Origin: Anthoceros angustus
Taxonomy: Eukaryota > Plantae > Anthocerotophyta
NCBI GenBank assembly: GCA_010909165.1
Contig: MU008185.1
Coordinates: 372,001 to 436,000 of the forward strand
Reading direction: 5' to 3'
Length of the DNA: 64,000 bases
The notes below the pieces were generated by a model. The model made no database searches, was not told the DNA's origin, and worked only from the letters and a program-made list of their open reading frames with translations. Of this stretch, positions 1 to 24,869 are shown one piece after another; position 1 is the first letter of the stretch; the number at the start of each line of letters is the position of its first letter. Made by a program: the position numbers and the translations under genes.

Positions 1-363
1 GGATGAGCAGGAAGTGGAGTGGGACGCCGTTTGCTCTGCTTGCCTTTTCTTGCAAGTCCTCCTGAGAAGGTGGGACGTTGTTGTGGAGGTTGGGCTATGG
101 CTGATCCATCTCTTCCTGCCGGCGCCGCTGGCCAGCACTGGCCAGCAGAAGTGGATTCGAATCTCCCAATCACACTTGCACGCTTTTCGTTGCAACTTGC
201 AAGAGCCCACATTGATCCATATAAGATAATTGGGATGAGCAGGAAGTGGAGTGGGACGCCGTTTGCTCTGCTTGCCTTTCCTTGCAAGTCCTCCTGAGAA
301 GGTGGGACGTTGTTGTGGAGGTTGGGCTATGGCTGATCCATCTCTTCCTGCCGGCGCCCCGCT
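1..363 (+). repeat. 232-bp tandem duplication covering the 5' leader and start codon of gene copy A
   Basis: 1-131 recurs at 233-~363. The junction is at GCGCCGCTGG (122-131). Copy B has a single unit bounded by GCGCCGCTGG at 14681-14690 and 14913-14922. Confidence 0.9.
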
Positions 364-3300
364 GGTGGACCTGCTCGAAATCCTCGAGTCCCGCTCGCCG
401 CAGCTGCGTGCGTTGCTTGCAGAGCTGGAGTCCGACTCGCCAAAGCGGCAGGAACTGCCATCTGTTGATTCGTGGGGAAGCTACTTCAATTGCGACTGCC
501 AGGACGGGGAATGTCACCACCGCGAGGAGTGGCACTGGGCGGTGCGCTTGCGTCTGCTCACCGCTATCGGCAGATGCCGTACGCTCAGGAAGATTCAACT
601 GAATCCTCTGTGGAAGAGGGTCACAGCGTGAGGCGGGACGAGGCGTTGGCGCTCTTTTCAGGCTTGCAACACAACCTTGTGCTGGAGGAGCTGAATCTGT
701 TTGGCTACAAGGGGTTTGGGACGGCAGCAGCGTGCCTCCAGGCACTGAGTGCTGTCATCGACAGAACTCATCGCTCACTGGACTTCCTCGGTCTGCAATC
801 TGTGGGATTGAGTGCAGAAGGACTGGGTGCCATCGCTGCAGCCCTTGGACGCAATGTCAGCTCTTCAGTGCTGTCCAGATTGTCTCTGTGTGGGAACGAC
901 ATCGGAATGCTGTCGGGGCGCAACACTTGGCCGACATCCTTACCAAGTCGCCCAAGCTGCGCAATCTCTGGATGAGCAACCATAGGCATGGACGAGGAAG
1001 GAGCCGTGGTGATTGCAGGCCCTGGCGCATACCACTACACTGGCTGGGCTTAGAATCGGAGATCCTGCGGAATCCAAACCGGCCCGCGCCCATGTTCCTC
1101 GTTCCATTGCTCCAAGCTTTGGTGTGGCACACCCTGGCGGATCCTCCAGCTGCTGTTTCTGGCAATCACTCCATCACACGGCTTGTCCTTGAGTGTCCGG
1201 GAGGCCAGGAGGCTGTGGAGCCGGGGCTGGGAGAAGCCCTGGCTCAGGTGCTGCACCAACCGGGCTCTGAAAGACCTCAGACTATCCAGCTTCTTCGTCA
1301 CACGCGGATTGGGAGCTCTGCGGGAAAACAGCAGCATCACCAAACTCCTGGTGTTTCACTCGCGGCAGTCGGAGGATGATGACATGGATCCCATCCTGAC
1401 CACCATCCTGGATGAGTGCAAGACTGTTGAGGAGGTTCAGATCCGGTTTGACAAGCCCTTTGGTCCGTCCAGCTTCACCAAGGCGTTTTTCAAGGGTTGC
1501 TGCAGAAAACCGCAGCATCAACAGGCTGGTGTTGGATGGCTGGGATGGGCTGGACGACGAGATGTTTGAAGACCTGATTCAATCCCTGTCTACCAACACC
1601 AACACCCACCTCAGGCTGGATCACATCTCCATCAAGGGCACCTCATGGGAAAAGCAAGGCAGGGGCGAACGTCTGGAGAAAGCGTTGGGAGCTGCGCGAG
1701 TGCAGCCGCAGCTGCGTGCGTTGCTCGCAGACTTGGAGTCCGAGTCGCCAGTGCTGCAAGAACTCCCATCTGTGGATTTGTGGGAAGCTATTTCGATTGC
1801 CTTTGCCAGGAGGCCTACAGGAGTGTCAACACCGGGGCAGTGGCAGTGGTACGTACGCCTGCGCCTGCTCACAGCTATCGGCAAATGCCGGTCGCTGAGG
1901 AAGATTCATCTGAATCCTCCGGGAGGAGGGCACTTACAGCGTGAGGGAGGTAGAGGCGCTGGCTCTGCTATCAGGCTTGCAACACAACCTTGTGCTGGAG
2001 GAGCTGAATCTGTATGGCTACAAGGGGTTGGGACGGCACCCTGCCTGCAGGCATTGACTGGCGTCATGGAGATGCTATTTCTCATTGGACTTGCTGGGTC
2101 TGCAACATCTGGGATTGAGTGCAGAAGGACTGGGTGTCATCGCTGCAGCCCTTGGACGCAACCGCAGCTCAGTGCTGTCCAGATTGTCTCTTTGTGGGAA
2201 CGACATCGGGAATGCTGTCGGGGCGCAACACTTGGCCGACATCCTTACCAACTCGCCCAAGCTCCGCAATCTATGGATGAGCAACATAGGCATGAACGAG
2301 GAAGGAGCCGTGGTGATTGCACAGGCCCTGGCGCATACCACTACACTGGCTGGGCTTAGAATCGGAGATCCTGCGCCCCGGAATCCAAACCAGCCCGCGC
2401 CCATGTTCCTCGTTCCATTGCTCCAAGCTTTGGTGTGGCACACCCTGGCGGATCCTCCAGCTGCTGTTTCTGGCAATCACTCCATCACACGGCTTGTCCT
2501 CGAGTGTCCGGGAGGCCAGGAGGCTGTGGAGCCGGGGCTGGGAGAAGCCCTGGCTCAGGTGCTTCACCAACCGGGCTCTGAAAGACCTCACACTATCCAG
2601 CTTCTTCGTCACACGCGGATTGGGAGCTCTGCGGGAAAACAGCAGCATCACCAAACTCCTGGTGTTCCACTCGCGGCAGTCGGAGGATGATGACATGGAT
2701 CCCAACCTGACCGCCATCCTGGATGAGTGCAAGACTGTTGAGGAGGTGCAGATCCGGTTTGACAAGCCCTTTGGTCCGTCCAGCTTCACCAAGGCGTTTT
2801 TCAAGGGTTGCTGCAGAAAACCGCAGCATCAACATGCTGGTGTTGGATGGCTGGGATGGGCTGGACGACGAGATGTTTGAAGACCTGATTCAATCCCTGT
2901 CTACCAACACCAACACCCACCTCAGGCTGGATCACATCTCCATCAAGGGCACCTCATGGGAAAAGCAAGGCAGGGGCGAACGTCTGGAGAAAGCGTTGGG
3001 AGCTGCGCGAGTGCAGCCGCAGCTGCGTGCGTTGCTCGCAGACTTGGAGTCCGAGTCGCCAGTGCTGCAAGAACTCCCATCTGTGGATTTGTGGGAAGCT
3101 ATTTCGATTGCCTTTGCCAGGAGGCCTACAGGAGTGTCAACACCGGGGCAGTGGCAGTGGTACGTACGCCTGCGCCTGCTCACAGCTATCGGCAAATGCC
3201 GGTCGCTGAGGAAGATTCATCTGAATCCTCCGGGGAGGATGGGCACAGCGTGAGGGAGGTAGAGGCGCTGGCGCTGCTATCAGGCTTGCAACACAACCTT

Positions 3301-6300
3301 GTGCTGGAGGAGCTGAATCTGTATGGCTACGTGGGCTTTGGGACGGGACCCTGCCTGCAGGCATTGACTGGCGTCATGGAGAGATGCTATTTCTCATTGG
3401 ACTTGCTGGGTCTGCAATATCTGGGATTGAGTGCAGAAGGACTGGGTGTCATCGCTGCAGCCCTTGGACGCAACCGCAGCTCAGTGCTGTCCAGATTGTC
3501 TCTTTGTGGGAACGACATCGGAATGCTGTCAGGGCGCAACATTTGGCCGACATCCTGAGGAATTCGATCGCCCTCCGCAATCTCTGGATGAGCAATATTG
3601 GCATGGATGAGGAAGGAGCCGTGCTGATTGCAGAGGCCCTGGCGAATACCACCACCCTGATCCGTCTCAGAATCGGAGACCCTGCGGAATCCAAACCAGC
3701 CCGCGCCCATGTTCATTGGTCCAATTCTCGAAGCTTTGGTGTGGCCGGATTCGGAGAATCAGGAGGATTGTCATCCTCTGCTTCTAGAGCCACTTCCAAT
3801 CGCTCCATCAGGCTGCTTGTTCTTGAGTGCCCAGGAGGCCAGCAGGCCGTGGAGCCGGGACTGGGAGAAGCCCTGGCTCGGTGCTGCGCACCAACCGTGC
3901 TCTCACTGACCTCAGACTTGCCAGCTTCTTCGTCACACGCGGATTGGAAGCGCTACCTGAAAACAGCAGCATCACCCAACTCCAAGTAAGTCACACGCGG
4001 AATTCGGAGGATGATGACATGGATCCTATGCTGATCACGATTCTTCAGGAGTGCAAGAATGTCCAGCAGCTGCAGCTTCAGTTTTATAAGCCCTTTGGTC
4101 CATCCAGCTTCTCCAAGGCGTTTTTCCAAGGGTTGCGGGATAATCGTAGCATCAAGACGCTTGTGTTGGATGACTGCGAAGGATTGGATGACTACATGTT
4201 CCAGAACTTGATGCGGTCTCTGGGACGCAACTGCAACAACGTCCTGGAGAACATTTCCATCAAGAAAACAACCTGGGAAAGCGAAGGCAAAGGAATATAC
4301 ATCCAGAATGCTCTCTCAAGGAACATGCGCAGAAGAAGCGCTGCTCCGCAGGGTAGGTGCCCAAGCCAGTAGCTAGCTACCCTTGTCCTGATTTGTATCT
4401 ACAGTCAGAACCCACAAACTCAGATGTATACTGACCCCTTCTCACTTGTGCAGGTTCGGAAGAAGTGCCACCACCGGTCACGGCAACTGTGGCAACCTCT
4501 GATGCCGCAGCAGGTAATGAAACTACATGAATCCATGGATTTGATCCAACCACTTCCAAGCTGTTGTTGTTGTTGCAATTTGTACCGAATGCACCACTTG
4601 ATGCTGCTGCTGGCAGGCAGTCTGATGATTGACTGATTGGCTGTTTTGTTTTCACCACAATTTCCAGTTGCTGTTCCTGAGGAGCTCAGTGCCCTGCTTG
4701 CCGAGCTCGACTCACCTTCGCCCACTCAGTAGTCTTCCTCGTGGAAGCGTTTGGGCACTTGTTCAAGAGGGACGTGGAACATCCACAGGTGGAACTTGAA
4801 CTGCGCATGCGCCTTATGAAGGCTATCGGAAATGCCCCACACTCAGATTCATAGATCTCGACCTCTTGGGCGTCGAAATTACAGGGTGACGGTGGCAGAG
4901 GCGATGGCGCTGCTAGAAGGCCTGAGCTCGAATGCAATAGTGGAACGGCTGGACTTGAGTGGCTTCCTTGGTTTTGGAACAGGTGAAGTCTGCGCTGCAA
5001 TCGCCGCTATCTTGCAATCCAGCCGCACCTTGCAATTTCTGAATATGGGATACACTGGCATGACTGTCGAAGGACTGGCTTGCATTGCCCTACTGCGACA
5101 TAATCGCAGCACTGTGCTTCGCACCTTGTATCTTTCTGGAAACACGACTGTGGGAGAAGGTGTTGGAGCTCAACACCTGGCTGATATCCTGACCAGCACT
5201 CCCGCTCTTCGCAACCTGGGGATGTGGGATACAGGGATGGATGAGGCGGGAGCATTGATGATAGGGGATGCTCTGGCTCAGAACACCACACTTGACTGGC
5301 TGAACATAGGATTCAATCAAGCGTGGAGGCCAAAGCAGGCAGGGATGATGGCCACGCTGTTAGCTCGAGCATTCACCCTGGCATGCTGGACGCAGACCAG
5401 GAGGCTGAAGGTGTTGCTCCCAAGCTTCCTTCTGTTAACGAGTCTGTCACACATCTCCAGCTGGAAGTATGGGGAGCAGGACAGCAGCCTGTCATCGCTG
5501 AGTTGGGAGAAGCTGTGGCCCGCATGCTGCGGTCGAACATGACTTTAAGGCATCTCGATGTATGTAGCTGCTTTATAAGCCAGGGATTGGAGGGGCTGTG
5601 TGACAACAGCAGCGTTATCCGTGTGACAGTCCGACATGGTAGCTCTAGTGCTAAGGAGGACTACTGCAAGCTGATGCCAATACTGCAGAGTTGCCAGACA
5701 GTGGAAAGTTTACAATTAGCTCAGAACAGTTTGGGACCTTTGGGATCATCCGACCTCCCGAAGACGTTTTTCAAATCGTTGCAGGACAATCGTTACCTCA
5801 ACAGGTTGGTGTTGGATGGCTGGAAAGGGTTGGACGACAATATGTTCCAAGACCTGTTGCGGGCTCTGCAAGTGAACACCAATTTGAAGAGTATATCGTT
5901 CGAGAACACTGTGTGGAAAAGTCAGGAAAAGGAGCTGCAGTGGATGAACTACTACGCCAAAACAGGGAATACCGGAAAGCTCTGGCAGGGGCTCCAACAA
6001 TGCCAGTGAAATCATGTCGCCTCGTACTTTGTGGATTTCCATATGCAGGTGAGCCACGTGCTGAACCCAAAGTTTGTACATCCCCAAATGGCGTAGTTGT
6101 GGCAGACTTCACTGCAGTTGTTTCTGTCTTCTCTACATCTGTTTTCTTGTCTTAACGTTGTTTTCGTCTCCGGAGTGTAATCGGTGGTAAATGTTGCTGT
6201 TTCAGGAAAACCACGATACGGAATACGTTGATGAGTATGCAAACACACGAAAACGATGTTGAGATGGAGGGTGAAACGATTTCGAAGCACATACCTCGAA

Positions 6301-9019
6301 CCCTTGGGTTTGAGGTTGAGGTGATAAAAGATGGTCCAGCCTTGAGAATTACCGTTTGGGATCTTGCAGGGCACCAGGAGTTTCATGCTCTTCACGATTT
6401 CGTCTTTCCTGCTGTGAATAACTCTTCTCTCTTCTTGTTTGTCTATAACCCGTTCAAATTTGGTGGTAATTATTCAAGTGCGGAAATGAAGGATAGAAAG
6501 GATTTTCGAGATGAATTTATTTATTGGCTTAAATTTATTGCTTCCAACTCGCGGTTAGCTCAACAGGTGAAACCTTATGTTCATGTGGTGGTAACATTTG
6601 GTGACAAGCTTGAAGGTAGGATGTCTTGAAGGTTGCAATACGGAGGAAGTGTTGGTGATGAAGAAAAGTTCATGGCTGTTGTGGAAACATCCAATGAACC
6701 CACTTTCATCAATGGACAGAGTTGGAAAGATGTGTATGCTCACGCCTCATAGAGGAAAAGCTACGCCAGCCAGCAAATTGGCCCCAATTCCCAATATTTG
6801 TGAGCAGACCGTATACATGTGCAAAGATGGGCTGAGGATCAACAAGGTATGCCAATCATTTCTGTTGAGAAGTTTAGTGAGTTGTTTCATAGCACATGTA
6901 AGGCGGCAATAGGGCATCCACTCATCTCGAGGATTACTGATTTCTTAGAGACTTCATGGACAAAGAGGATAGCTGGAAAGTAGTAGCATCATATCTCAAG
7001 GATTCGGGAGATCATATATTTCCAAATGTCACAGCTTATGGTCATCAACCTCCGATGGTTAGGAATGGGCGTTTTGGTCAGCTGATTAGTATATTTGGTG
7101 AACGGACAATAGGCAAGATTGGCTTCAAGTTCAAAATGGGTTCATCAGCAAATATGGGTTGAGTAGCCTTCTAAAAATGTCTTTGAACAAGGTAGGGCTT
7201 GATGAAACCATTGTGAGCGAGGAACAATTCATCCAATTGATGCTGAGTTACACCTTTGCCACGAAAGTAGAGATGAGGAAGGAGAAGTGCGTTATTTTGT
7301 TCCAATATGTATGCATAAAGAAGAAGATGGAGTTGATCAACAGTTAGTATGGCCTTCACGGTGGTAATCTTCATGATTATATCTTTATGGGTTTGCGTCT
7401 ACAATGTGATGATCAAGATTGTACATTCCTCACACCAGGATTTTTCCCTAGGTTACAGGTTTGTAACTTTTCTCAAGCTCACTATCTTTTGTTTTATGTC
7501 CTTGGAAACTTCTTCTTTTGTTTATTATTATTATTATTATTAGTCTCATTGTTCCTATATATTGTAGGTACTTTTATACACATATTGTTTGACAAAAGGC
7601 TGGGTTGATGAGGAAAGACCAATTGATTCAGAATAAAATTGGAGCCTAATGTCCTTTTAATATCTGCAGAGGCATTGGATATCTTTGTGGAATTTAATGC
7701 TGAATTGGTTGCTACATAGATATCTTGGCCCGATCTACTCAAGGCTATTTAGAGTCCATGTCATTTTGAAGGAACATATTGTATCTCGATTCGGGCATTT
7801 TGTGCTTCGTATGAGGGTTGTGCAGGTCACATTGGTTGAAGGTGTTCTTCGACATGAATGTGTGGCATCCCTCACTCTATGAACATAGGAGACACGAGTG
7901 TATCGGCGGATAAGCTAGTCAAAGCGGTGGCTGCTGCAAAGGACCGATGCTATGCTCACTCACTACCTTGGACACAGGCCTGTGTGGCGCAGGCTCTCAT
8001 TTTAAAGGCCAACATAGAGTATGCAACCGTGGTGAATGGTCATGTCATTTTGGGACAAAAGAGGACCTTGCCCAGCGAGTTCCAAGGTTGAAGCTCTCAA
8101 TCCTGTGAATAGTCTTTGTTTTGCTAGGTGTCCTTGTTCATGTAGTTTTCTATAGCATTACAGTAGGCCGTTTCTTGCAAACTCGAGGTGCATTGCAGGA
8201 TCAAAATCTAGCGGAGAAGATGCTGAAACTTCTACTATCCCATAAGTGCAAAGTGCGAAAGAAGAACCTATTGTTGGGAGTAGTTATCCTAACCATGGTG
8301 TGGAAGGAGGAAAGCGAAGAGGTTTGGCAATGATTGAGTATGGAAGTGGACGGACTGGAGGAGCTTGGGCGAGGCGAGAAGCTCTTTTGAGACTTTGGCA
8401 TTTGATACTATATATTAGTGGGCAGTTGAGAGTGTGAAAGCACGATTTAGGAGCGTTGCCAAACTCCTACCTAGCTAAGGACGATTGCTTTTCATGTTGC
8501 ATCAATGCTCATGGGGATTGAAGAAGATGGCGAGACAATACATTCTCATAAGTGGAGCACGGCGGAGAAGCTATATGTTGATGATGACATCTTGAAGCCC
8601 ATCTCGAATCCACGTGGTTGAGAGACAAGCCCAAGGTGTTTTGATCAATGCTTGTCGAGCCTTGGTAGCCTTATCACAAGCGAGAAGCTAAGGACTCTAA
8701 AGTTGAGAGTAGCCAAATGGTGAGCAAGAGAGCCGGAGAAGTCCGATTCACATTACATGAAGGATTGTCTCATCTTCTTCTCGACGATCATGGACAACAA
8801 TCCTTTAGAGATGTTGAGAAAGGCACAAACTTTATCACGGCTTTGATGAAAGCCATCATTCGGTGTCGAAGAAGGGATGATGTGTGACATTTTAACATCG
8901 ATGATTGCGAGGTCACGGAGATAGAAGTCAAGCTCCCAAGTGAAGAAGGAAGGCGAGAAGAGATCCGGTGTCGAGTTGTACTCCACACTCACAAAAAGCT
9001 TTGCTGGTCTTTACCATAA
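329..9019 (+). CDS. TORNADO1-like LRR-Roc-COR protein with C-terminal caspase domain, copy A (heavily frameshifted as assembled)
   Basis: ATG 329 (MADPSLPAG). RNI-like LRRs (LEELNL, LSRLSLCGNDIG, LRNLWMSNIGM). P-loop VLCGFPYAG|KTT. G3 VWDLAGHQEFHALHD. COR QCDDQDCTFLTPGFFPRLQV. Caspase INAHG, KPKVF-LINACR, STLTKK; TAA 9017-9019. GT-AG introns at about 4353-4453, 4514-4667, 6049-6205, 7459-7567. Confidence 0.85.
399..5990 (+). repeat. Four ~1.31-kb (~438 aa) LRR super-modules inside the ROCO gene
   Basis: CGCAGCTGCGTGCGTTGCT (PQLRALL) starts at 399, 1707 and 3018. A diverged fourth module (ELSALLAEL) starts near 4680. Copy B equivalents are 14956, 16269, 17585 and ~19265. Confidence 0.95.
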
Positions 9020-10504
9020 GTTCACTCACTTGGCCACGGAATTCGGTGTGGCCATGTTCCTTCATCCGTAACCAAACTCTAGTAGAATCATCGTTTCCAA
9101 CAAGACATTGTTGGTGCAGCAAATTGCTTCTAATGCGGTCTCATTTGTCCTTTTCTGCTCATTTCTTGTTCGTGGCTCGCATACAATTTGGAGAAAACAA
9201 CTCCTTACGTGGATGAACACAGTGGGTGAGAGCTCATGGACTTTAGGGAGGAAAGAACAAGGAGTTATGGACGGCATACTCTTTGGTTTCAAGAAGCAAG
9301 TCCGGATGTAAGCGTTCTCGATCGAATGACTTCTAGTCCTTTTGCATATTAGATGTGTGTTCCATCTTCTTGAGTGGACGGATGTCCCTCACTCAAATCG
9401 CGTTTGAGGCTTGCCTTTCTTTCACGATGAGAAAACACAAAGCGCGGACAGTAGCTCACAGCGTGCTAGTGCCAAACCCTCATCTCCGGTGTTAGGGCTA
9501 TGACATTTTCGCTATTGAAATCTGGATTAGGTTACTTTTCATGCATCACCGGCACAAACATGTATGTAAGTTTGTGTTGCATCAATGCTCATGGGGATTG
9601 AAGAAGATGCTAGTAGGTCACACTCCATGCTCATGGGGATTGAAGAAGATGGCGAGGTCCAGTGGGAACTTGCTTTGTGCATTAGTTCGCTGGATGACAC
9701 TTACCTGTACCTAGAATCATTTGTGCCGGAATTTTAGAACCTGTTGTCACAGCTTGATCGAGGTTGAAGGCCGAGATCAATCACCCCGAAGGAGCAGCGA
9801 AACTTTGATGCGATGCTAGCGTGTTCCGGGAGCGAGAGCAAGCTGGGAAGCTATGCACAATTTGTATAGCATGATTGTGGCCAGAACTCGGTAAGCAACC
9901 TGGTGCCACTAGTGGTTAGAAGCACCCTAGCGCGGTGCTTCTACTAGCCTTCATGGGTAGCGTATATGACTATATAATCGCCATGTCTATCCATGACAAT
10001 CTTTGTTTCTGTTTATGTTTATCCCTGTCTATATTGCTATGATTATTTGCAAGGTACAGTTCTCAATTAGAGTATAGAGTACTTTACTAGGACTTACAAC
10101 AAAAATATATATTTACTTTTAAATATCTAGAATGGCAACAAAGAAGCCTTTTATAGTCCACTCGGACAGAATTTCCTTAACAACTTGTATCATGGTGCAC
10201 ACCTCAAAACGTGCTCAAACAACCCGGAACATGGAGGGCAATCACGCTCGTGTTTGAGTCACGTGTCGAGCACTAAGACATGAGTCAAGTCTCCGTACTA
10301 AGACATGAGTCACATCTTTGAGTACAAAACAATACTAACAAGCTAAAATGGAGACTCTTCTAATGAGGGATACAATATAAGCATGTGTAGGCATGAGTGG
10401 CACAAGAAGATGCTAGTAGGTCACACTCCATACCCGATCATCGGATAAAAACTAATGTAGTTTAGGTTTGAATTTGCGTGGAACTTGGCAATACGAAACT
10501 ATGA

Positions 10505-12129: not shown

Positions 12130-14237
12130 TACACGTCCGCATCTTTCTTCCATCAGGTCATCAAGAGGTGCATTGCACACAAAGATCTGGGTGCTGGCAG
12201 GGTGTGCATACCCTGATTGTCAGAAGTGGGTATGTGGCAGCAGATTCTTGGCTAATCACGTCATCGCGTGTATGCTGCCTATGGGAGGTTGGAGGATGCG
12301 TTGCAGGTTTTGAATGGATTGGCTGCTCCCAATGCTTATTCGTGGTCCTCCAGAGTTGAGGCACATGTTGACAATGGACAGGCCAGGCAGGCAATCGAGA
12401 TCTATTTGAGGATGGAACAGTCATCCCTATGTTGGCAGCTAATCTTCTGTTTGTGGCAGCATTTAAGGCTTGTGCCAGTGCAGAAGATCTGACATCAGGC
12501 AGACAGGTCCATTCCGATGTCCTGAGTAGTGTGCTTGAGCCTGATGTGTTTGTTGGGAGCTGCCTGGTGGAAATGTATGCAAGATGTGGGAGGTTGGATG
12601 ATGCTCGCACAATCTTTGACAAGTTGGACTCGAGAAACGTGGTCACATGGAATACGGTGCTTGGAGGGTATGCTCAGGGTGGGCGTGGGCAAGAAGCCCT
12701 TGCGCTCTATGCAAGTATGCAAGAGGAGGAATCCACCTGCCTGACCATGTCACGTTTTGTGCCTCCTCAAAGCATGTGCTAGCAGTGGAACACGACACCA
12801 GGAAGGCAGCTTCATTCACAAATACAGGAAGCAGGTGTCGGATCTGAGGTGATGGTGGGAGCTGCCTCATAGATATGTATGCAAGATGTGGAAGCTTGGA
12901 TGATGCCCGGACTGCCTTTGACAACATGACCAGAAGAAATGTGGTGACCTGGAACGTGATGCTCGCAAGATATGCTGATGGTGGGCTAGGTGAAGAAGCC
13001 CTGTCTCTTTATGCAACTATGCAACAGGAGGGCGTTACTTCAGCAGATCACGTAACTTTGTGTGCCTTCTGAAAGCATGTAAAAGCATCGGGGCATTGGA
13101 GCAGGAAGGCAGCTACATGACCAGGTTCAGGAGATGGGCTGCAAGTTGACGTGGTCATTTCGAGCTGCCTGGTGGACATGAATGCAAAGTGTGGGAGCTG
13201 AGAGGATGCCCGCAGGGTGTGCATACCCTGATTGTCAGAAGTGGGTATGTGGCAGCAGATTCTTGGCTAATCACGTCATCCGCGTGTATGCTGCCTATGG
13301 GAGGTTGGAGGATGCGTTGCAGGTTTTGAATGGATTGGCTGCTCCCAATGCTTATTCGTGGTCCTCCAGAGTTGAGGCACATGTTGACAATGGACAGGCC
13401 AGGCAGGCAATCGAGATCTATTTGAGGATGGAACAGTCATCCCTATGTTGGCAGCTAATCATCTGTTTGTGGCAGCATTTAAGGCTTGTGCCAGTGCAGA
13501 AGATCTGACATCAGGCAGACAGGTCCATTCCGATGTCCTGAGTAGTGTGCTTGAGCCTGATGTGTTTGTTGGGAGCTGCCTGGTGGAAATGTATGCAAGA
13601 TGTGGGAGGTTGGATGATGCTCGCACAATCTTTGACAAGTTGGACTCGAGAAACGTGGTCACATGGAATACGGTGCTTGGAGGGTATGCTCAGGGTGGGC
13701 GTGGGCAAGAAGCCCTTGCGCTCTATGCAAGTATGCAAGAGGAGGAATCCACCTGCCTGACCATGTCACGTTTTGTGCCTCCTCAAAGCATGTGCTAGCA
13801 GTGGAACACGACACCAGGAAGGCAGCTTCATTCACAAATACAGGAAGCAGGTGTCGGATCTGAGGTGATGGTGGGAGCTGCCTCATAGATATGTATGCAA
13901 GATGTGGAAGCTTGGATGATGCCCGGACTGCCTTTGACAACATGACCAGAAGAAATGTGGTGACCTGGAACGTGATGCTCGCAAGATATGCTGATGGTGG
14001 GCTAGGTGAAGAAGCCCTGTCTCTTTATGCAACTATGCAACAGGAGGGCGTTACTTCAGCAGATCACGTAACTTTGTGTGCCTTCTGAAAGCATGTAAAA
14101 GCATCGGGGCATTGGAGCAGGAAGGCAGCTACATGACCAGGTTCAGGAGATGGGCTGCAAGTTGACGTGGTCATTTCGAGCTGCCTGGTGGACATGAATG
14201 CAAAGTGTGGGAGCTGAGAGGATGCCCGCAGGGTGTG
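12130..14237 (+). pseudogene. PLS-class pentatricopeptide-repeat gene (frameshifted as assembled; start approximate)
   Basis: Typical motifs: VFVGSCLVEMYARCGRLDDARTIFDKLDSRNVVTWNTVLGGYAQGG and MYARCGSLDDARTAFDNMTRRNVVTWNVML. No E/DYW domain recognised. Confidence 0.85.
12197..14237 (+). repeat. 1016-bp near-perfect tandem duplication within the PPR gene
   Basis: ORF pairs are offset by 1016 (12429/13445, 12875/13891). GCAGGGTGTG occurs at 12197, 13212 and 14228. Confidence 0.95.
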
Positions 14238-14887: not shown

Positions 14888-17800
14888 ATGGCTGATCCAT
14901 CTCTTCCTGCCGGCGCCGCTGGTGGACCTGCTCGAGATCCTCGAGTCCCGCTCGCCGCAGCTGCGTGCGTTGCTTGCAGAGCTGGAGTCCGACTCGCCAA
15001 AGCGGCAGGAACTGCCATCTGTTGATTCGTGGGAAGCTACTTCAATTGCGACTGCCAGGACGGGGAATGTCACCACCGCGAGGAGTGGCACTGGGCGGTG
15101 CGCTTGCGTCTGCTCACCGCTATCGGCAGATGCCGTACGCTCAGGAAGATTCAACTGAATCCTCTGTGGAAGAGGGTCACAGCGTGAGGCGGGACGAGGC
15201 GTTGGCGCTCTTTTCAGGCTTGCAACACAACCTTGTGCTGGAGGAGCTGAATCTGTTTGGCTACAAGGGGTTTGGGACGGCAGCAGCGTGCCTCCAGGCA
15301 CTGAGTGCTGTCATCGACAGAACTCATCGCTCACTGGACTTCCTCGGTCTGCAATCTGTGGGATTGAGTGCAGAAGGACTGGGTGCCATCGCTGCAGCCC
15401 TTGGACGCAATGTCAGCTCTTCAGTGCTGTCCAGATTGTCTCTGTGTGGGAACGACATCGGAATGCTGTCGGGGCGCAACACTTGGCCGACATCCTTACC
15501 AAGTCGCCCAAGCTGCGCAATCTCTGGATGAGCAACATAGGCATGGACGAGGAAGGAGCCGTGGTGATTGCAGGCCCTGGCGCATACCACTACACTGGCT
15601 GGGCTTAGAATCGGAGATCCTGCGCCCCGGAATCCAAACCGGCCCGCGCCCATGTTCCTCGTTCCATTGCTCCAAGCTTTGGTGTGGCACACCCTGGCGG
15701 ATCCTCCAGCTGCTGTTTCTGGCAATCACTCCATCACACGGCTTGTCCTTGAGTGTCCGGGAGGCCAGGAGGCTGTGGAGCCGGGGCTGGGAGAAGCCCT
15801 GGCTCAGGTGCTTCGCACCAACCGGGCTCTGAAAGACCTCAGACTATCCAGCTTCTTCGTCACACGCGGATTGGGAGCTCTGCGGGAAAACAGCAGCATC
15901 ACCAAACTCCTGGTGTTTCACTCGCGGCAGTCGGAGGATGATGACATGGATCCCATCCTGACCACCATCCTGGATGAGTGCAAGACTGTTGAGGAGGTTC
16001 AGATCCGGTTTGACAAGCCCTTTGGTCCGTCCAGCTTCACCAAGGCGTTTTTCAAGGGTTGCTGCAGAAAACCGCAGCATCAACAGGCTGGTGTTGGATG
16101 GCTGGGATGGGCTGGACGACGAGATGTTTGAAGACCTGATTCAATCCCTGTCTACCAACACCAACACCCACCTCAGGCTGGATCACATCTCCATCAAGGG
16201 CACCTCATGGGAAAAGCAAGGCAGGGGCGAACGTCTGGAGAAAGCGTTGGGAGCTGCGCGAGTGCAGCCGCAGCTGCGTGCGTTGCTCGCAGACTTGGAG
16301 TCCGAGTCGCCAGTGCTGCAAGAACTCCCATCTGTGGATTTGTGGGAAGCTATTTCGATTGCCTTTGCCAGGAGGCCTACAGGAGTGTCAACACCGGGGG
16401 CAGTGGCAGTGGTACGTACGCCTGCGCCTGCTCACAGCTATCGGCAAATGCCGGTCGCTGAGGAAGATTCATCTGAATCCTCCGGGAGGAGGGCACTTAC
16501 AGCGTGAGGAGGTAGAGGCGCTGGCTCTGCTATCAGGCTTGCAACACAACCTTGTGCTGGAGGAGCTGAATCTGTATGGCTACAAGGGGTTTGGGAGGGC
16601 ACCCTGCCTGCAGGCATTGACTGGCGTCATGGAGAGATGCTATTTCTCATTGGACTTGCTGGGTCTGCAACATCTGGGATTGAGTGCAGAAGGACTGGGT
16701 GTCATCGCTGCAGCCCTTGGACGCAACCGCAGCTCAGTGCTGTCCAGATTGTCTCTTTGTGGGAACGACATCGGGAATGCTGTCGGGGCGCAACACTTGG
16801 CCGACATCCTTACCAACTCGCCCAAGCTCCGCAATCTATGGATGAGCAACATAGGCATGAACGAGGAAGGAGCCGTGGTGATTGCACAGGCCCTGGCGCA
16901 TACCACTACACTGGCTGGGCTTAGAATCGGAGATCCTGCGCCCCGGAATCCAAACCAGCCCGCGCCCATGTTCCTCGTTCCATTGCTCCAAGCTTTGGTG
17001 TGGCACACCCTGGCGGATCCTCCAGCTGCTGTTTCTGGCAATCACTCCATCACACGGCTTGTCCTCGAGTGTCCGGGAGGCCAGGAGGCTGTGGAGCCGG
17101 GGCTGGGAGAAGCCCTGGCTCAGGTGCTTCGCACCAACCGGGCTCTGAAAGACCTCACACTATCCAGCTTCTTCGTCACACGCGGATTGGGAGCTCTGCG
17201 GGAAAACAGCAGCATCACCAAACTCCTGGTGTTCCACTCGCGGCAGTCGGAGGATGATGACATGGATCCCAACCTGACCGCCATCCTGGATGAGTGCAAG
17301 ACTGTTGAGGAGGTGCAGATCCGGTTTGACAAGCCCTTTGGTCCGTCCAGCTTCACCAAGGCGTTTTTCAAGGGTTGCTGCAGAAAACCGCAGCATCAAC
17401 ATGCTGGTGTTGGATGGCTGGGATGGGCTGGACGACGAGATGTTTGAAGACCTGATTCAATCCCTGTCTACCAACACCAACACCCACCTCAGGCTGGATC
17501 ACATCTCCATCAAGGGCACCTCATGGGAAAAGCAAGGCAGGGGCGAACGTCTGGAGAAAGCGTTGGGAGCTGCGCGAGTGCAGCCGCAGCTGCGTGCGTT
17601 GCTCGCAGACTTGGAGTCCGAGTCGCCAGTGCTGCAAGAACTCCCATCTGTGGATTTGTGGGAAGCTATTTCGATTGCCTTTGCCAGGAGGCCTACAGGA
17701 GTGTCAACACCGGGGGCAGTGGCAGTGGTACGTACGCCTGCGCCTGCTCACAGCTATCGGCAAATGCCGGTCGCTGAGGAAGATTCATCTGAATCCTCCG

Positions 17801-20800
17801 GGAGGATGGGCACTTACAGCGTGAGGGAGGTAGAGGCGCTGGCGCTGCTATCTGGCTTGCAACACAACCTTGTGCTGGAGGAGCTTAATTTGCTTGGCTA
17901 CGTGGGCTTTGGGACGGGACCCTGCCTGCAGGCATTGACTGGCGTCATGGAGAGATGCTATTTCTCATTGGACTTGCTGGGTCTGCAATATCTGGGATTG
18001 AGTGCAGAAGAACTGGGTGTCATCGCTGCAGCCCTTGGACGCAACCGCAGCTCAGTGCTGTCCAGATTGTCTCTTTGTGGGAACGATATCGGGAATGCTG
18101 TCGGGGCGCAACATTTGGCCGACATCCTGAGGAATTCGCCCGCCCTCTACAATCTCTTCATGAGCAATATTGGCATGGACGAGGAAGGAGCCGTGCTGAT
18201 TGCAGAGGCCCTGGCGAATACCACCACCCTGATCCGTCTCAGAATCGGAGACCCTGCGCCCCGGAATCCGAAGCAGCCGGCGCCCATGTTCATTGGTCCA
18301 ATTCTCGAAGCTTTGGTGTGGCACACGCCGGATTCGGAGAATCAGGAGGATTGTCATCCTCTGCTTCTAGAGCCACTTCCAATCGCTCCATCAGGCTGCT
18401 TGTTCTTGAGTGCCCAGGAGGCCAGCAGGCCGTGGAGCCGGGACTGGGAGAAGCCCTGGCTCGGTGCTGCGCACCAACCGTGCTCTCACTGACCTCAGAC
18501 TTGCCAGCTTCTTCGTCACACGCGGATTGGAAGCGCTACCTGAAAACAGCAGCATCACCCAACTCCAAGTAAGTCACACGCGGAATTCGGAGGATGATGA
18601 CATGGATCCTATGCTGATCACGATTCTTCAGGAGTGCAAGAATGTCCAGCAGCTGCAGCTTCAGTTTTATAAGCCCTTTGGTCCATCCAACTTCTCCAAG
18701 GCGTTTTTCCAAGGGTTGCGGGATAATCGTAGCATCAAGACGCTTGTGTTGGATGACTGCGAAGGATTGGATGACTACATGTTCCAGAACTTGATGCGGT
18801 CTCTGGGACGCAACTGCAACAACGTCCTGGAGAACATTTCCATCAAGAAAACAACCTGGGAAAGCGAAGGCAAAGGAATATACATCCAGAATGCTCTCTC
18901 AAGGAACATGCGCAGAAGAAGCGCTGCTCCGCAGGGTAGGTGCCCCAAGCCAGTAGCTAGCTACCCTTGTCCTGATTTGTATCTACAGTCAGAACCCACA
19001 AACTCAGATGTATACTGACCCCTTCTCACTTGTGCAGGTTCGGAAGAAGTGCCACCACCGGTCACTGCAACTGTGGCAACCTCTGATGCCGCAGCAGGTA
19101 ATGAACTACATGAATCCATGGATTTGATCCAACCACTTCCAAGCTGTTGTTGTTGTTGCAATTTGTACCGAATGCACCACTTGATGCTGCTGCTGGCAGG
19201 CAGTCTGATGATTGACTGATTGGCTGTTTTCCTTTTCACCACAATTTCCAGTTGCTGTTCCTGAGGAGCTCAGTGCCCTGCTTGCCGAGCTCGACTCACC
19301 TTCGCCTACACTCAGTAGTCTTCCTCGTGTGGAAGCGTTTGGGCACTTGTTCAAGAGGGACGTGGAACATCCACAGGTGGAACTTGAACTGCGCATGCGC
19401 CTCATGAAGGCTATCGGAAAATGCCCCACACTCAGATTCATAGATCTCGACCGTCTTGGGCGTCGAAATTACAGGGTGACGGTGGCAGAGGCGATGGCGC
19501 TGCTAGAAGGCCTGAGCTCGAATGCAATAGTGGAACGGCTGGACTTGAGTGGCTTCCTTGGTTTTGGAACAGGTGAAGTCTGCGCTGCAATCGCCGCTAT
19601 CTTGCAATCCAGCCGCACCTTGCAATTTCTGAATATGGGATACACTGGCATGACTGTCGAAGGACTGGCTTGCATTGCCCTACTGCGACATAATCGCAGC
19701 ACTGTGCTTCGCACCTTGTATCTTTCTGGAAACACGACTGTGGGAGAAGGTGTTGGAGCTCAACACCTGGCTGATATCCTGACCAGCACTCCCGCTCTTC
19801 GCAACCTGGGGATGTGGGATACAGGGATGGATGAGGCGGGAGCATTGATGATAGGGGATGCTCTGGCTCAGAACACCACACTTGACTGGCTGAACATAGG
19901 ATTCAATCAAGCGTGGAGGCCAAAGCAGGCAGGGATGATGGCCACGCTGTTAGCTCGAGCATTCACCCTGGCATGCTGGACGCAGACCAGGAGGCTGAAG
20001 GTGTTGCTCCCAAGCTTCCTTCTGTTAACGAGTCTGTCACACATCTCCAGCTGGAAGTATGGGGAGCAGGACAGCAGCCTGTCATCGCTGAGTTGGGAGA
20101 AGCTGTGGCCCGCATGCTGCGGTCGAACATGACTTTAAGGCATCTCGATGTATGTAGCTGCTTTATAAGCCAGGGATTGGAGGGCTGTGTGACAACAGCA
20201 GCGTTATCCGTGTGACAGTCCGACATGGTAGCTCTAGTGCTAAGGAGGACTACTGCAAGCTGATGCCAATACTGCAGAGTTGCCAGACAGTGGAAAGTTT
20301 ACAATTAGCTCAGAACAGTTTGGGACCTTTGGGATCATCCGACCTCCCGAAGACGTTTTTCAAATCGTTGCAGGACAATCGTTACCTCAACAGGTTGGTG
20401 TTGGATGGCTGGAAAGGGTTGGACGACAATATGTTCCAAGACCTGTTGCGGGCTCTGCAAGTGAACACCAATTTGAAGAGTATATCGTTCGAGAACACTG
20501 TGTGGAAAAGTCAGGAAAAGGAGCTGCAGTGGATGAACTACTACGCCAAAACAGGGAATACCGGAAAGCTCTGGCAGGGGCTCCAACAATGCCAGTGAAA
20601 TCATGTCGCCTCGTACTTTGTGGATTTCCATATGCAGGTGAGCCACGTGCTGAACCCAAAGTTTGTACATCCCCAAATGGCGTAGTTCGTGGCAGACTTC
20701 ACTGCAGTTGTTTCTGTCTTCTCTACATCTGTTTTCTTGTCTTAACGTTGTTTTCGTCTCCGGAGTGTAATCGGTGGTAAATGTTGCTGTTTCAGGAAAA

Positions 20801-23691
20801 CCACGATACGGAATACGTTGATGAGTATGCAAACACACGAAAACGATGTTGAGATGGAGGGTGAAACGATTTGAAGCACATACCTCGAACCCTTGGGTTT
20901 GAGGTTGAGGTGATAAAAGATGGTCCAGCCTTGAGAATTACCGTTTGGGATCTTGCAGGGCACCAGGAGTTTCATGCTCTTCACGATTTCGTCTTTCCTG
21001 CTGTGAATAACTCTTCTCTCTTCTTGTTTGTCTATAACCCGTTCAAATTTGGTGGTAATTATTCAAGTGCGGAAATGAAGGATAGAAAGGATTTTCGAGA
21101 TGAATTTATTTATTGGCTTAAATTTATTGCTTCCAACTCATGTTAGCTCAACAGGTGAAACCTTATGTTCATGTGGTGGTAACATTTGGTGACAAGCTTG
21201 AAGGTAGGATGTCTTGAAGGTTGCAATACGGAGGAAGTGTTGGTGATGAAGAAAAGTTCATGGCTGTTGTGGAAACATCCAATGAACCCACTTTCATCAA
21301 TGGACAGAGTTGGAAAGATGTGTATGCACTCGCAGCCTCATAGAGGAAAAGCTACAGCTTGTCAAAATTGGCCCCAATTCCCAATATTTGTGAGCAGACC
21401 CGTATACATGTGCAAAGATGGGCTGAGGATCAACAAGGTATGCCAATCATTTCTGTTGAGAAGTTTAGTGAATTGTTTCATAGCACATGTAAGGCGGCAA
21501 TAGGGCATCCACTCATCTCAGAGGATTACAGAAGATTTCTTCGAGACTTCATGGACAAAGAGGATAGCTGGAAAGTAGTAGCATCATATCTCAAGGATTC
21601 AGGGGAGATCATATATTTCCAAATGTCACGGCTTATGGTCATCAACCTCCGATGGTTAGGAATGGGCGTTTTTGGTCAGCTGATTAGTATATTTGGTGAA
21701 CCGGACAATATGCAAGATTTGCTTCAAGTTCAAAATGGGTTCATCAGCAAATATGGGTTGAGTAGCCTTCTAAAAGTGTCTTTGAACAAGGTCGGGCTTG
21801 ATGAAACCATTGTGAGCGAGGAACAATTCATCCAATTGATGCTTGAGTTACACCTTTGCTACGAAAGTAGAGATGAGGAAGGAGAAGTGCGTTATTTTGT
21901 TCCAATATGTATGCATAAAGAAGAAGATGGATCAGGTTGATCAACGATTAGTATGGCCTTCACACGGTGGTAATCTTCATGATTATATCTTTATGGGTTT
22001 GCGTCTACAATGCGATGATCAAGATTGTACATTCCTCACACCAGGATTTTTCCCTAGGTTACAGGTTTGTAACTTTTCTCAAGCTCACTATCTTTTGTTT
22101 TATGTCCTAGGAAACTTCTTCTTTTGTTTATTATTATTATTTACTGTTAACTAGTCTCATTGCCTATATATTGTAGGTACTTTTATACACATATTGTTTG
22201 ACAAAAGGCTGGGTTGATGAGGAAAGACCAATTGATTCAGGAATAAAATTGGAGCGTAATGTCCTTTTAATATCTGCAGAGGCATTGGATATCTTTGTGG
22301 AATTTAATGCCGAAATCGGTTGCTACATAGATATATTGGCCCGATCTACTCAAGGCTATTTAGAGTCCATGTCATTTCTGAAGCAACATATTGTATCTCA
22401 GATTCGGGCATTTTGTGCTTCGTATGAGGGTTGTCAGGGTTACATTGGTTGAAGGTGTTCTTCGACATGAATGTGTGGCATCCCTCACTCTATGTAGACA
22501 TAGGAGACACGAGTGTATCGGCGGATAAGCTAGTCAAAGCGGTGGCTGCTGCAAAGGACCGATGCTATGCTCACTACGCGCAGACTTGGAGGCTGTCTTG
22601 GGCACCGAGCTCTACACTCATTTTAAAGGCCAACATAGAGTATGCAACCGTGGTGAATGGTCATGTCATTTTGGGACAAAAGAGGACCTTGCCAAAGCCG
22701 AGCGAGTTCCAAGGTTGAAGCTCTCAATCCTGTGAATAGTTTGTTTTGCTAGGTGTCCATACTCGCACATGTAGTTTTCTAGCATTACACAAGTAGGCGT
22801 TTCTTGCAAACTCGAGGCTGTGCATTGCGGGATCAAAATCTAGCAGAGAAGTTGCTGAGACTTCTACACTATCCCATAAGTAGTGCAAGTGCGAAAGAAG
22901 AACCTTTTGTTGGGAGTAGTTATCCTAACCATGGTGTGGAAGGAGGCAAACGAAGAGGTTTGGCAATGATTGTGAGTATGGAAGTGGACAGACCTGGAGG
23001 AGCTGTAGACAGAGGGCGACTTGAAGCTCTTTTTGAGACTTTGGCATTTGATACTAATATATTAGTGGACGGTTCTGAGAGTGTGAAAGCACGATTTAGG
23101 AGCGTTGCCAAACTCCCTACCTTAGCTAAGGACGATTGCTTTCTGTGTTGCATCAATGCTCATGGGGGGATTGAAGAAGATGGCAGACAATACATTCTCA
23201 TAAGTGGAGCACGGCGGGAGAAGCTATATGTTGATGATGACATCTTGAAGCCCATCTCTGAATCCACGTGGTTGAGAGACAAGCCCAAGGTGTTTTGATC
23301 AATGCTTGTCGAGGCACTGGTAGCCTTATCACAAGCGAGAAAGCTAAGGACTCTGAAGTTGAGAGTAGCCAAATGGTGAGCAAGAGAGCCGGAGAAGTCC
23401 GATTCCTGCATTCTGTGAAGGATTGTCTCATCTTCTTCTCGACCAGTCATGGACAACAATCCTTTAGAGATGTTGAGAAAGGCACAAACTTTATCACAGC
23501 TTTGATGAAAGCCATCATTCAGGGGTCTCGAAGAAGGGATGATGTGTACAGCATTTTAACATCAGTGATTGCCGAGGTCACGGAGATAGAAGTCAAGCTC
23601 CCAAGTGAAGCAGGAAGGCGCCCTGAGAAGAGATCCCAGTGTCGAGTTGTACTCCACACTCACAAAAAAGCTTTGCTGGTCTTTACCATAA
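14888..23691 (+). CDS. TORNADO1-like LRR-Roc-COR protein with C-terminal caspase domain, copy B (better preserved, still with several indels)
   Basis: ATG 14888. Long LRR ORFs 16278-17447, 17290-18492, 19212-20132. GT-AG introns at about 18936-19037, 19098-19251, 20638-20795, 22065-22176. Roc and COR ORFs 20871-21146, 21359-21940, 22198-22452. Caspase ORFs 22804-23298 and 23268-23756; STLTKKLCWSLP-TAA ends at 23691. Confidence 0.9.
20600..21300 (+). other. Roc GTPase domain of copy B
   Basis: G1 CRLVLCGFPYAG|KTT is split by an intron. G2-like RTLGFEV, G3 TVWDLAGHQEFHALHDFVFP, G4-like VVVTFGDK. Confidence 0.9.
21330..22600 (+). other. COR region, TORNADO1 type, of copy B
   Basis: YLKDSGEIIYF, VINLRWLG, QLMLELHLCYE, YFVP, GLRLQCDDQDCTFLTPGFFPRLQV, VTLVEGVLRHECV. 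Confidence 0.85.
22921..23691 (+). other. Caspase (peptidase C14, p20+p10) domain of copy B
   Basis: RRGLAMIV, DRPGGAVDRGRLEALFETLAF, DDCFLCCINAHG (His codon 23161), KPKVF/LINACRG (Cys codon 23307), DCLIFFSTSHGQQSFRDVEKGTNFITALMKAI, STLTKKL. Confidence 0.92.
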
Positions 23692-24869
23692 GTTCACTCA
23701 CTTGGCCAATGGGAATTCGGTGTGGCCATGTTCCTTCATCCGTAACCAGACTGTAGTAGAATCATCGTTCCCAACAAGACATTGTTGGTGAAGCAAATTG
23801 CTTCTAATGCGGTCTCATTTGTCCTTTTCTGCTCATTTCTTGTTCAGTGGCTCGCATACAATTTGGAAGAGAAACAACTCCTTCTGTGGATGAACCTGTA
23901 GGTGAGAGCTCATGGACTTTAGGGAGGAAAGAACAAGGGAGTTATGGACTGTACTCTTTGGTTTCAAGAAGCAAGTCCAGATGTAAGCGTTCCTTGATCG
24001 AATGACTTCTAGTCCTTTTGCATATTAAATGTGTGTTCCATCTTCTTGAGCGGCCCAGGCTGGGACAGGATGTCCCTCACTCAAATCGCGTTTGAGGCTT
24101 GCCTTTCTTTCACGATGAGAAAACACAAAGCGCGGACAGTAGCTCACAGTGGCTAGTGCCAAACCCTCATCTCCGGTGTTAGGGCTATGACATTTTCGCT
24201 ATTGAAATCTGGATTAGGTTACTTTTCATGCATCACCGACAGCACAAACATGTATGTAAGTTTGTGTTGTCCTTCCAATTGTGCCGGTGACAGCAGAATG
24301 TCTGCGTGCCGTCCTAGGACTTTGAACAGCGGTTCCGCTTAACAACAGCAAATGGCGAGGTCTAGGCTGTGGGAATTTGCTTTGTGCAGCTGAAGTTTCT
24401 GCTGGATGACACTTACCTGTACCTAGAATCATTTGTGCCGGAATTTTAGAACTGTTGTCACAAGATAAGGAAAAATCCACATTAGGGAGGTGCACAAAAA
24501 GGGTTGAAAACGCCAAAAGGAACCCTTTAAAACAATAAATTTATCAAAATAAATACAAAATAAGCTCAAAAAATGCCAAAATTTTAAGATAAGTGCGCAC
24601 ACTTGTGCGCGCATTTGGCTCAAAAACTTGGATTTTTTTTTTTGGGAATTTTTGTATTTTTTAGATTTTTTACTTTTTTTTTCTTTGAATGAACCGTCTG
24701 GGAATGCACTAGTAGACATGAACCCTATGGGTTCATGCCCCTAAAGCTTCTTGACCCTACGTGCGTGCACCTAGGCCCCCTTGCCCCCTGGTGTGCACAC
24801 AAGTGCGCGCATCTTCACTTAGGGGTTTTTTCTCTTTTCCAGATTCTATTATTGCAGGAATTTGCTCGA

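Follow-up and report, generated by a model that had tools for sequence, protein, structure and literature searches.

A tandemly duplicated locus of the hornwort Anthoceros angustus encodes a candidate LRR-Roc-COR-caspase receptor

Locus and domain architecture of the duplicated gene

We analyzed a stretch of 64,000 nucleotides (nt) from the hornwort Anthoceros angustus (contig MU008185.1, positions 372,001 to 436,000), referred to below as the window, and within it a gene for a candidate "Roco-caspase" that is present in two tandem copies, A and B. The window is plant nuclear DNA, with genes for PPR repeats, recognized as open reading frames (ORFs) with Pfam PPR matches, between and beyond both copies. 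In copy B (positions 14888 to 23691, forward strand), four super-repeats of leucine-rich repeats (LRRs) of the ribonuclease inhibitor-like (RNI) type are followed by Roc, COR-A, a COR-B-like stretch, and Peptidase_C14. The predicted product of each copy is a single chain of about 2,700 amino acids that comprises an LRR array, Roc, COR, and a caspase-like protease. The original prediction, made from the letters of the window, had proposed LRR, Roc, COR, and caspase domains in this order as well as a repeat of the arrangement; the Pfam, PDB, and Atlas matches place all of these domains in that order on one strand, and the repeat was found as copy A by self-comparison. The features are listed in Table 1.

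Table 1. Features of the Roco-caspase locus (positions are those of the window)
Feature	Position	Strand	Evidence or remark
Copy A, tandem duplicate	356..9126	+	tblastx self-comparison, ORFs, DNA alignments
LRR sensor region, copy B	14888..20604	+	Direct repeats, translations, PDB and Pfam LRR_6 matches
Intron 1 (GT..AG, 154 nt), within LRR region ahead of module 4	19098..19251	+	RNA joint 19094 to 19249, cut shift +3
Roc G domain	20605..21340	+	Pfam Roc, LRRK2 Roc match, Atlas Roc clusters
Intron 2 (157-158 nt)	20638..20795	+	980-nt RNA contig bridging 20055-20637 and 20795-21187
COR-A, end ...FLTPGFFPRLQ	21344..22064	+	Pfam COR-A, Atlas clusters
Intron 3 (GT..AG, 112 nt)	22065..22176	+	RNA joint 22062 to 22175, cut shift +2
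COR-B-like region and linker	22177..22713	+	Position; similarity to contig L002
Intron 4, COR-B exon to caspase exon (GT..GG in copy B, GT..AG in copy A)	22714..22830	+	RNA joint 22701 to 22842, 28-nt bridge
Linker and caspase domain	22831..23691	+	Pfam PF00656, PDB caspase matches, family alignment
p20, with DRPGG and CINAHGG (His codon 23161-23163)	about 22948-23295	+	
p10, with INACRG (Cys codon 23307-23309), SFR, and C terminus ...QCPELYSTLTKKLCW if two extra C's of RNA contigs are counted	23297-23688	+	
Stop codon	23689-23691	+	

The four RNI-type modules of the LRR array measure about 438 to 446 amino acids each; modules 1 to 3 are near-identical, and module 4 has diverged. The spacing of the direct repeats gives a super-repeat period of 1316 to 1340 nt (about 1.32 kb). 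One module matched LRRP (4.7e-11), ribonuclease inhibitor (6.7e-8), and also the LRRs of NOD2 and NLRP1 in the PDB, and Pfam LRR_6 matched the LRR region of copy B at 2.2e-5. A single-sequence AlphaFold model of an LRR module had a predicted local distance difference test (pLDDT) value of 42.7 and was unusable; the LRR type is therefore based on the PDB sequence search.

The Roc domain contains the G1 motif GFPYAG-KTT, split by intron 2 at the hyphen, the switch I motif RTLG, the G3 motif WDLAGHQEF, and a G4-like motif, VTFGD. Pfam Roc matched partial pieces at 1e-4 (20871 to 21146) and 7.5e-5, under the gathering score, and the Atlas Roc clusters matched with scores of 0.91 to 0.93. Across switch II, a Roc piece of the window aligns with the Roc domain of LRRK2 (VWDLAGHQEF versus VWDFAGHEEF). 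The Roc domain of copy A includes an unbroken piece of 133 amino acids (6228 to 6629). For COR-A, a partial piece of 193 amino acids (21359 to 21940) matched Pfam COR-A at 5.9e-6 with 26.7 bits, under the cutoff of 35.3, and Atlas COR-A clusters matched with a score of 0.97. Within the COR-B-like stretch, positions 22177 to 22449 are 40% identical (E 7e-14) to a stretch that precedes a caspase in contig L002, described below. Neither NB-ARC nor NACHT was matched by Pfam on any piece of the gene. The predicted switch is Roc-COR, and the likeness to nucleotide-binding LRR receptors (NLRs) is one of analogy only.

In the six-frame self-comparison, positions 14888 to 23800 recur in copy A, which puts the length of the tandem unit at about 14.5 kb. 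In their LRR-Roc parts, the two copies are about 97 to 100% identical. In contrast, their COR-caspase parts are about 90 to 95% identical with many insertions and deletions, copy A being the more broken one. A segment of 25 nt from the caspase His box, also present at 8505 in copy A, has two extra exact copies at 9585 to 9609 and 9627 to 9651. Located about 450 nt past the end of copy A, these derive from the p20 exon, of which they are a stray duplicated piece.

The caspase domain and its plant relatives

Both halves of the caspase domain matched PF00656 (Peptidase_C14) above the curated cutoff of 21.4 bits, namely, with 30.9 bits (2.8e-7) at 22804 to 23298 and 45.9 bits (7.4e-12) at 23268 to 23756, so that the profile match expected of a caspase was obtained. 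The PDB matches of both halves were exclusively animal caspases, including caspase-8 (3.3e-5) and caspase-2 (7.9e-4). The HMMER alignments to caspase-2 and caspase-8 (caspase-1 numbering) place the Arg of DRPGG at the position of Arg179, SFR at that of Arg341, and CINAHGG at the His box. INACRG, the Cys box, pairs with QACRG, in which Gln283 is replaced by Asn. Both the His and the Cys boxes are thus present, and in both copies the Cys box follows a one-base break in a run of T. A metacaspase or paracaspase (C14B) was considered and rejected: none was found among the PDB sequence matches or among the 50 fold matches listed for a relative (see below), and the S1 positions are basic.

A HMMER search with the p10 half against 1.84 billion representative proteins returned 15 matches, none closer than 34 to 38% identity. 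They comprise caspases of mollusks and insects, contigs, and a transcript of the hornwort Nothoceros aenigmaticus. Word-indexed protein searches with pieces of p20 and COR-A, in which a length filter left out full-length relatives, gave no match. The AlphaFold DB cluster search returned entries with caspase-type names or unnamed entries, apart from a glutathione transferase and a glutathione synthetase; with the organisms masked, there was no recognizable plant entry among them.

With a profile built from the plant matches, 16 unnamed proteins with CFVCFVSAHG and KPKVFFINACRG in common were recovered, followed by molluscan caspases. The halves of the window caspase are 35 to 40% identical to this plant family and 26 to 31% identical to animal caspases. 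By its sequence, the domain is assigned to this unnamed plant family, defined by the motif KPKVFFINACRG. The AlphaFold model of one relative, P0021 (mean pLDDT of 69.7; at least 90 for 106 of its 394 residues), matched caspases-3, -7, -8, -9, -6, and -1 with target TM scores of 0.78 to 0.86, and all 50 matches listed were caspases. In a quick maximum-likelihood tree, which had no independent outgroup, the plant sequences were separated from those of nine animal caspase domains with an SH-aLRT support of 100. They formed two groups: (i) the window copy, the hornwort transcripts, and COR-linked contigs and (ii) NB-ARC-linked members. No placement within the animal caspase clade was seen in this tree, and the plant caspases would fit a sister family better than membership in one of the animal caspase subfamilies. 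No relative of the plant family was found in a pattern scan of bacterial and archaeal genomes, and a scan of metagenome contigs with the family alignment gave only weak matches (23 to 40% identity), none of which had Roc, COR, or NB-ARC nearby.

The genomic context of the relatives is of two kinds. (i) In six contigs from Logan, ENA, and JGI assemblies (L001 and L003 to L007), an NB-ARC-LRR ORF is preceded on the same strand by a caspase ORF, often in tandem units. The NB-ARC ORF begins about 190 to 280 nt downstream in some of them, and an ORF for a hydrolase-like protein of about 250 amino acids lies between the two in others. Because the caspase family adjoins NB-ARC-LRR genes, it appears as an effector domain paired with a second, undisputed immune-receptor chassis. 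(ii) Contig L002 contains a COR-B-like stretch followed by p20 and p10, and its near-copies L020 and L021, which stem from two runs, have one open frame from the tail of COR-B (VEAAIRHVCVE...) to the C terminus of the caspase. The identity of these contigs to the window gene is 32 to 40%. The recurrence of COR-B followed by a caspase in such divergent contigs indicates that the fusion is old and maintained and not an accident of the window locus.

As a separate observation, L002 and L020/L021, Logan contigs of two related runs, are mostly identical over the first 330 nt aligned, have different frame-shifting insertions or deletions (7 nt and 2 nt), and differ by an in-frame stop codon in L002. 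Alleles are one possible explanation, and paralogues at different stages of decay are another.

Splicing, transcription, and reading frame

To assess transcription, we compared positions 19000 to 23950 with RNA contigs from a public run in which about half of the words sampled were present. The contigs skip four stretches with splice-site ends, introns 1 to 4 of Table 1 (the limits of introns 2 and 4 are approximate), and the fall of contig depth over these stretches indicates that the run contains spliced RNA. The 980-nt contig that passes from the last LRR exon to the Roc exon has no mismatches in its first piece and three in its second. Removal of intron 2 creates the P-loop codons GCA GGG AAA ACC ACG (A G K T T). 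The P-loop across the intron and the WDLAGHQEF motif had been predicted, and they read exactly so in the sequence and at the RNA junction. At intron 4, the COR-B exon continues into the caspase exon in frame, with ...KEDLAKAEQSSK joined to DQNLAEKLL..., if an extra A at 22677 and an extra A in the bridge are counted. A transcript that runs from COR to the caspase was hence seen, at the level of short-read contigs. Among the 196 RNA contigs placed on the locus, 61 were at least 99% alike. The Roco-caspase family is thus certainly transcribed, and the assignment of the transcripts to copy B is partial.

The RNA contigs also bear on the frame of the assembled gene. At 25 places, they hold bases that are absent from the window, and all 12 of the differences listed are insertions relative to the window. 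Most of the missing bases lie in runs of G or correspond to a C lost before G, as is characteristic of errors in long-read assemblies at homopolymers and methylated CpG. The frame breaks are probably for the most part assembly errors, since most of them are such lost bases, which the RNA contigs restore. In two contigs, which account for about 40% of the depth there, two extra C's follow position 23642; the C terminus then becomes ...QCPELYSTLTKKLCW, ending at the stop codon given in Table 1, and this frame fits the family consensus far better than the assembled one. An in-frame TAG is located at 21341 to 21343, where the RNA contig carries nine extra bases and the frame is uncertain.

The base-calling error in G runs and at C before G (20100 to 23700), possibly at methylated CpG, appears to be systematic, which has to be borne in mind for all ORFs called in this genome.

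The remainder of the window contributes the following. Between the two copies, two ORFs 1016 nt apart (12429 to 12782 and 13445 to 13798) encode near-identical PPR-repeat products of 117 amino acids that differ by two residues; the PPR gene between the copies is internally duplicated or fragmented. The ORF at 51978 to 52586 has a strong match to DUF7869 (E 3e-37) and is probably a transposon-related gene. The rest of the region from 24 to 62 kb looks repeat rich and has no clear host gene. No gasdermin-like ORF was present in the ORF lists of the window, in which broken ORFs could hide one, and 10 flanking or distal ORFs matched PPR and DUF7869 only.

Candidate receptor function and comparison with known systems

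Our favored interpretation, to which we assign a probability of about 0.55, is that copies A and B belong to an expressed, multicopy Roco-caspase family that functions inside the cell as an immune or cell-death receptor, the caspase being its effector. It is favored because the caspase family adjoins NB-ARC-LRR genes and because of the tandem duplication, the LRR rearrangement, and the decaying paralogues. Tandem duplication, a variable LRR super-repeat, and decaying paralogues were taken as traits typical of immune-receptor loci. The original prediction of a ROCO receptor-protease gains support from the caspase relatives beside NB-ARC-LRR genes and from the recurrence of the COR-B-caspase arrangement; its mechanism, a sequence from ligand to dimerization to caspase activity, belongs to the part that we infer, namely, ligand sensing, control by GTP, dimer-driven activation, specificity at P1, and a cell-death outcome.

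Roc-COR proteins alternate between monomer and dimer according to their nucleotide state; for initiator caspases, induced proximity is the means of activation. In the resting state of the proposed receptor, the caspase would be kept monomeric or occluded by the LRR array together with the nucleotide state of Roc-COR. Binding of a ligand to the LRRs, or their perturbation, would alter the nucleotide cycle of Roc and the dimeric or oligomeric state mediated by COR. Brought together in this way, the caspase domains would gain activity through induced proximity and cut their substrates behind an acidic residue.

A number of observations weigh against this interpretation, and most of them would be expected if both window copies were decayed, nonfunctional relics, a pseudogene pair of a real family whose transcripts come from intact paralogues elsewhere. 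(i) Copy B has about 20 single-base frame breaks between 20.1 and 23.7 kb and no intact ORF as assembled, and copy A also has many. The claim of a single gene extending from the LRRs to the caspase accordingly stands with regard to domain order and splice junctions and fails with regard to an intact ORF in the assembly. (ii) A break in the T run at 23293 to 23296, between KPKVF and LINACRG and ahead of the catalytic Cys, is common to both copies, which have four T's where the family motif KPKVF-[FL]INACRG needs five. (iii) The acceptor of the last intron is GG in copy B versus AG in copy A. (iv) The caspase part of copy A has gaps of 5 and 8 nt and scrambled stretches. (v) The RNA variants mostly correspond to the letters of copy A in Roc-COR-A and often to neither copy in the caspase part, which indicates that some transcripts come from paralogues. 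Several arguments oppose decay. The listed RNA differences are bases missing from the window and bear the signature of assembly error described above; apart from the TAG at 21341 to 21343, no stop codon made by a substitution was seen along the coding path of copy B; and the 980-nt RNA contig matches copy B with zero to three mismatches and restores the frame, in addition to the 61 contigs that are at least 99% alike. A relic pair, which is compatible with a functional family, is the main alternative and in our estimation rather unlikely. Two further points against a receptor with a caspase effector concern the domains themselves: the replacement of Gln283 by Asn renders the P1 preference uncertain, and COR-B gave no Pfam match on the broken pieces, its assignment being derived from its position and its similarity to L002.

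The chassis of the gene permits another explanation, a developmental or trafficking ROCO in which the caspase is a regulated processing protease whose substrate serves a housekeeping or developmental process. Roles outside cell death are also known for caspases, which is compatible with such a function. The combination of RNI-like LRRs with ROC-COR is shared with TORNADO1, the sole characterized plant ROCO, which acts in leaf patterning and thus in development (PMC4104024), and this also counts against a receptor. However, the gene is in tandem and multicopy, with a recently rearranged LRR array and decaying paralogues, which would not be expected of a conserved developmental gene present once per genome; relatives of the caspase are attached to NB-ARC-LRR genes; and the lack of a close homologue among the 1.84 billion proteins speaks against a conserved core function. 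A developmental ROCO is therefore quite improbable in our estimation. An artifact, be it a chimeric assembly, a contaminant, or a ROCO gene merged with a separate caspase gene, might be suspected from the animal-type caspase, the error-rich assembly, and the capacity of short-read contigs to merge neighbors. Against it, PPR genes lie on both sides on the same contig, the arrangement is tandemly duplicated, the reading frame continues from the COR-B exon into the caspase exon across a splice junction, COR-B and caspase occur together on independent contigs from other runs, and in the tree the caspase falls among plant sequences, one of them a hornwort transcript, apart from animal caspases. The plant grouping, the PPR flanks, the tandem repeat, and the in-frame junction led us to reject contamination by animal DNA and the two-gene reading, and an artifact of any kind is highly improbable.

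In full-text literature searches, we found no paper that describes a Roco-caspase, a plant C14A-like caspase, or a plant caspase-NLR. The novelty claimed for a plant LRR-Roc-COR-caspase is borne out as far as these searches reach, since neither a paper nor an annotated protein with this combination was found. The new effector of this candidate ROCO receptor is surprising for plants. The caspase-(hydrolase)-NLR arrangement of the related contigs constitutes a candidate class in another plant and was likewise found in no paper. According to textbooks and recent papers, among them PMC12521494, plants have no caspases and rely on metacaspases. The present data show a plant genome that encodes and transcribes a caspase-like domain that, among solved structures, is nearest to animal caspases and retains the basic Arg residues of S1, in a family wired to two sensor-switch modules, Roc-COR in the window and NB-ARC in the related contigs. 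The window gene is thereby a candidate for a new class of immune receptors in non-seed plants. If active, it would (i) provide a testable single-chain model for caspase activation by induced proximity, (ii) extend the ROCO family to a protease effector, and (iii) reopen the timing of the origin of caspase-type death signaling and its possible loss in vascular plants. A broader and more doubtful proposal is that some land plants of the bryophyte grade, with hornworts and their kin as the probable group, have a true caspase-based system of regulated cell death in which a single-chain LRR-Roc-COR sensor acts directly on an acid-specific caspase to activate it and the same family serves as an NLR executioner, a plant counterpart of the inflammasome/pyroptosis axis. 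If true, plants could no longer be said to lack caspases.

Several known systems resemble the window gene in part. By description, TORNADO1 of Arabidopsis (TRN1/LOP1) has the same order of N-terminal RNI-like LRRs and ROC-COR (PMC4104024). A protein of the TORNADO1 family would have no further domain behind ROC-COR, and TORNADO1 itself ends after COR, lacks a protease, and has a patterning role, whereas in the window gene COR is followed by a linker of about 40 amino acids and a caspase, the LRR array is much longer (four modules of about 440 amino acids), and the gene is tandem and multicopy. The LRR-ROCO proteins of brown algae, candidate immune receptors with exon-shuffled LRRs (PMC3341825, PMC11378527), share LRR-ROC-COR, the organization in multigene families, and the rearrangement of LRR units with the window gene. 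However, they have no fused caspase or other enzymatic effector and belong to a different eukaryotic supergroup.

Elsewhere, Roc-COR is a switch for death or immunity domains, which is a precedent for the window gene. ROCO proteins with CARD, death, or TIR domains are known in Trichoplax (PMC4104024), and the Atlas clusters include bacterial COR-A/COR-B-CHAT (a family named as kinase), Roc/COR-A-TIR, and molluscan COR-CARD/Death. The animal ROCOs (DAPK1 and those of Trichoplax and mollusks) couple a Roc-COR switch to the apoptosis machinery, as proposed here (PMC4104024, PMC11378527), yet their adaptor domains would recruit a separate caspase, whereas the window gene would carry the caspase within its own chain. 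In prokaryotic conflict systems, Kaur et al. (2020) described Roc-COR "AP-GTPases" (PMC7159879). The bacterial Roc-COR-CHAT and Roc-COR-TIR proteins, read as an anti-invader switch with its effector, similarly join Roc-COR to a caspase-like peptidase of clan CD (CHAT) or to TIR; CHAT is a distant, prokaryotic family of the caspase fold, whereas animal caspases are the nearest match of the window domain.

The likeness to inflammasomes and the apoptosome (NLRP1, NLRC4, and Apaf-1 with caspase-1 or -9) is purely functional and consists of a sensor, an NTPase switch, and a caspase activated by induced proximity. The window gene differs in having a Roc-COR GTPase instead of a STAND ATPase and in combining the parts in one chain without CARD or PYD adaptors. 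A further comparison is with the caspase-NB-ARC-LRR contigs, whose caspases belong to the same family (CFVCFVSAHG and KPKVFFINACRG; 35 to 40% identity). There, the caspase ORF lies upstream of NB-ARC-LRR, in a position like that of an N-terminal executioner of an NLR, whereas in the window the caspase is C-terminal to Roc-COR and falls in a separate subclade. The caspase-(hydrolase)-NB-ARC-LRR loci resemble, in turn, the hydrolase-NBS-LRR class of liverworts (PMC3352924), with a caspase placed in front.

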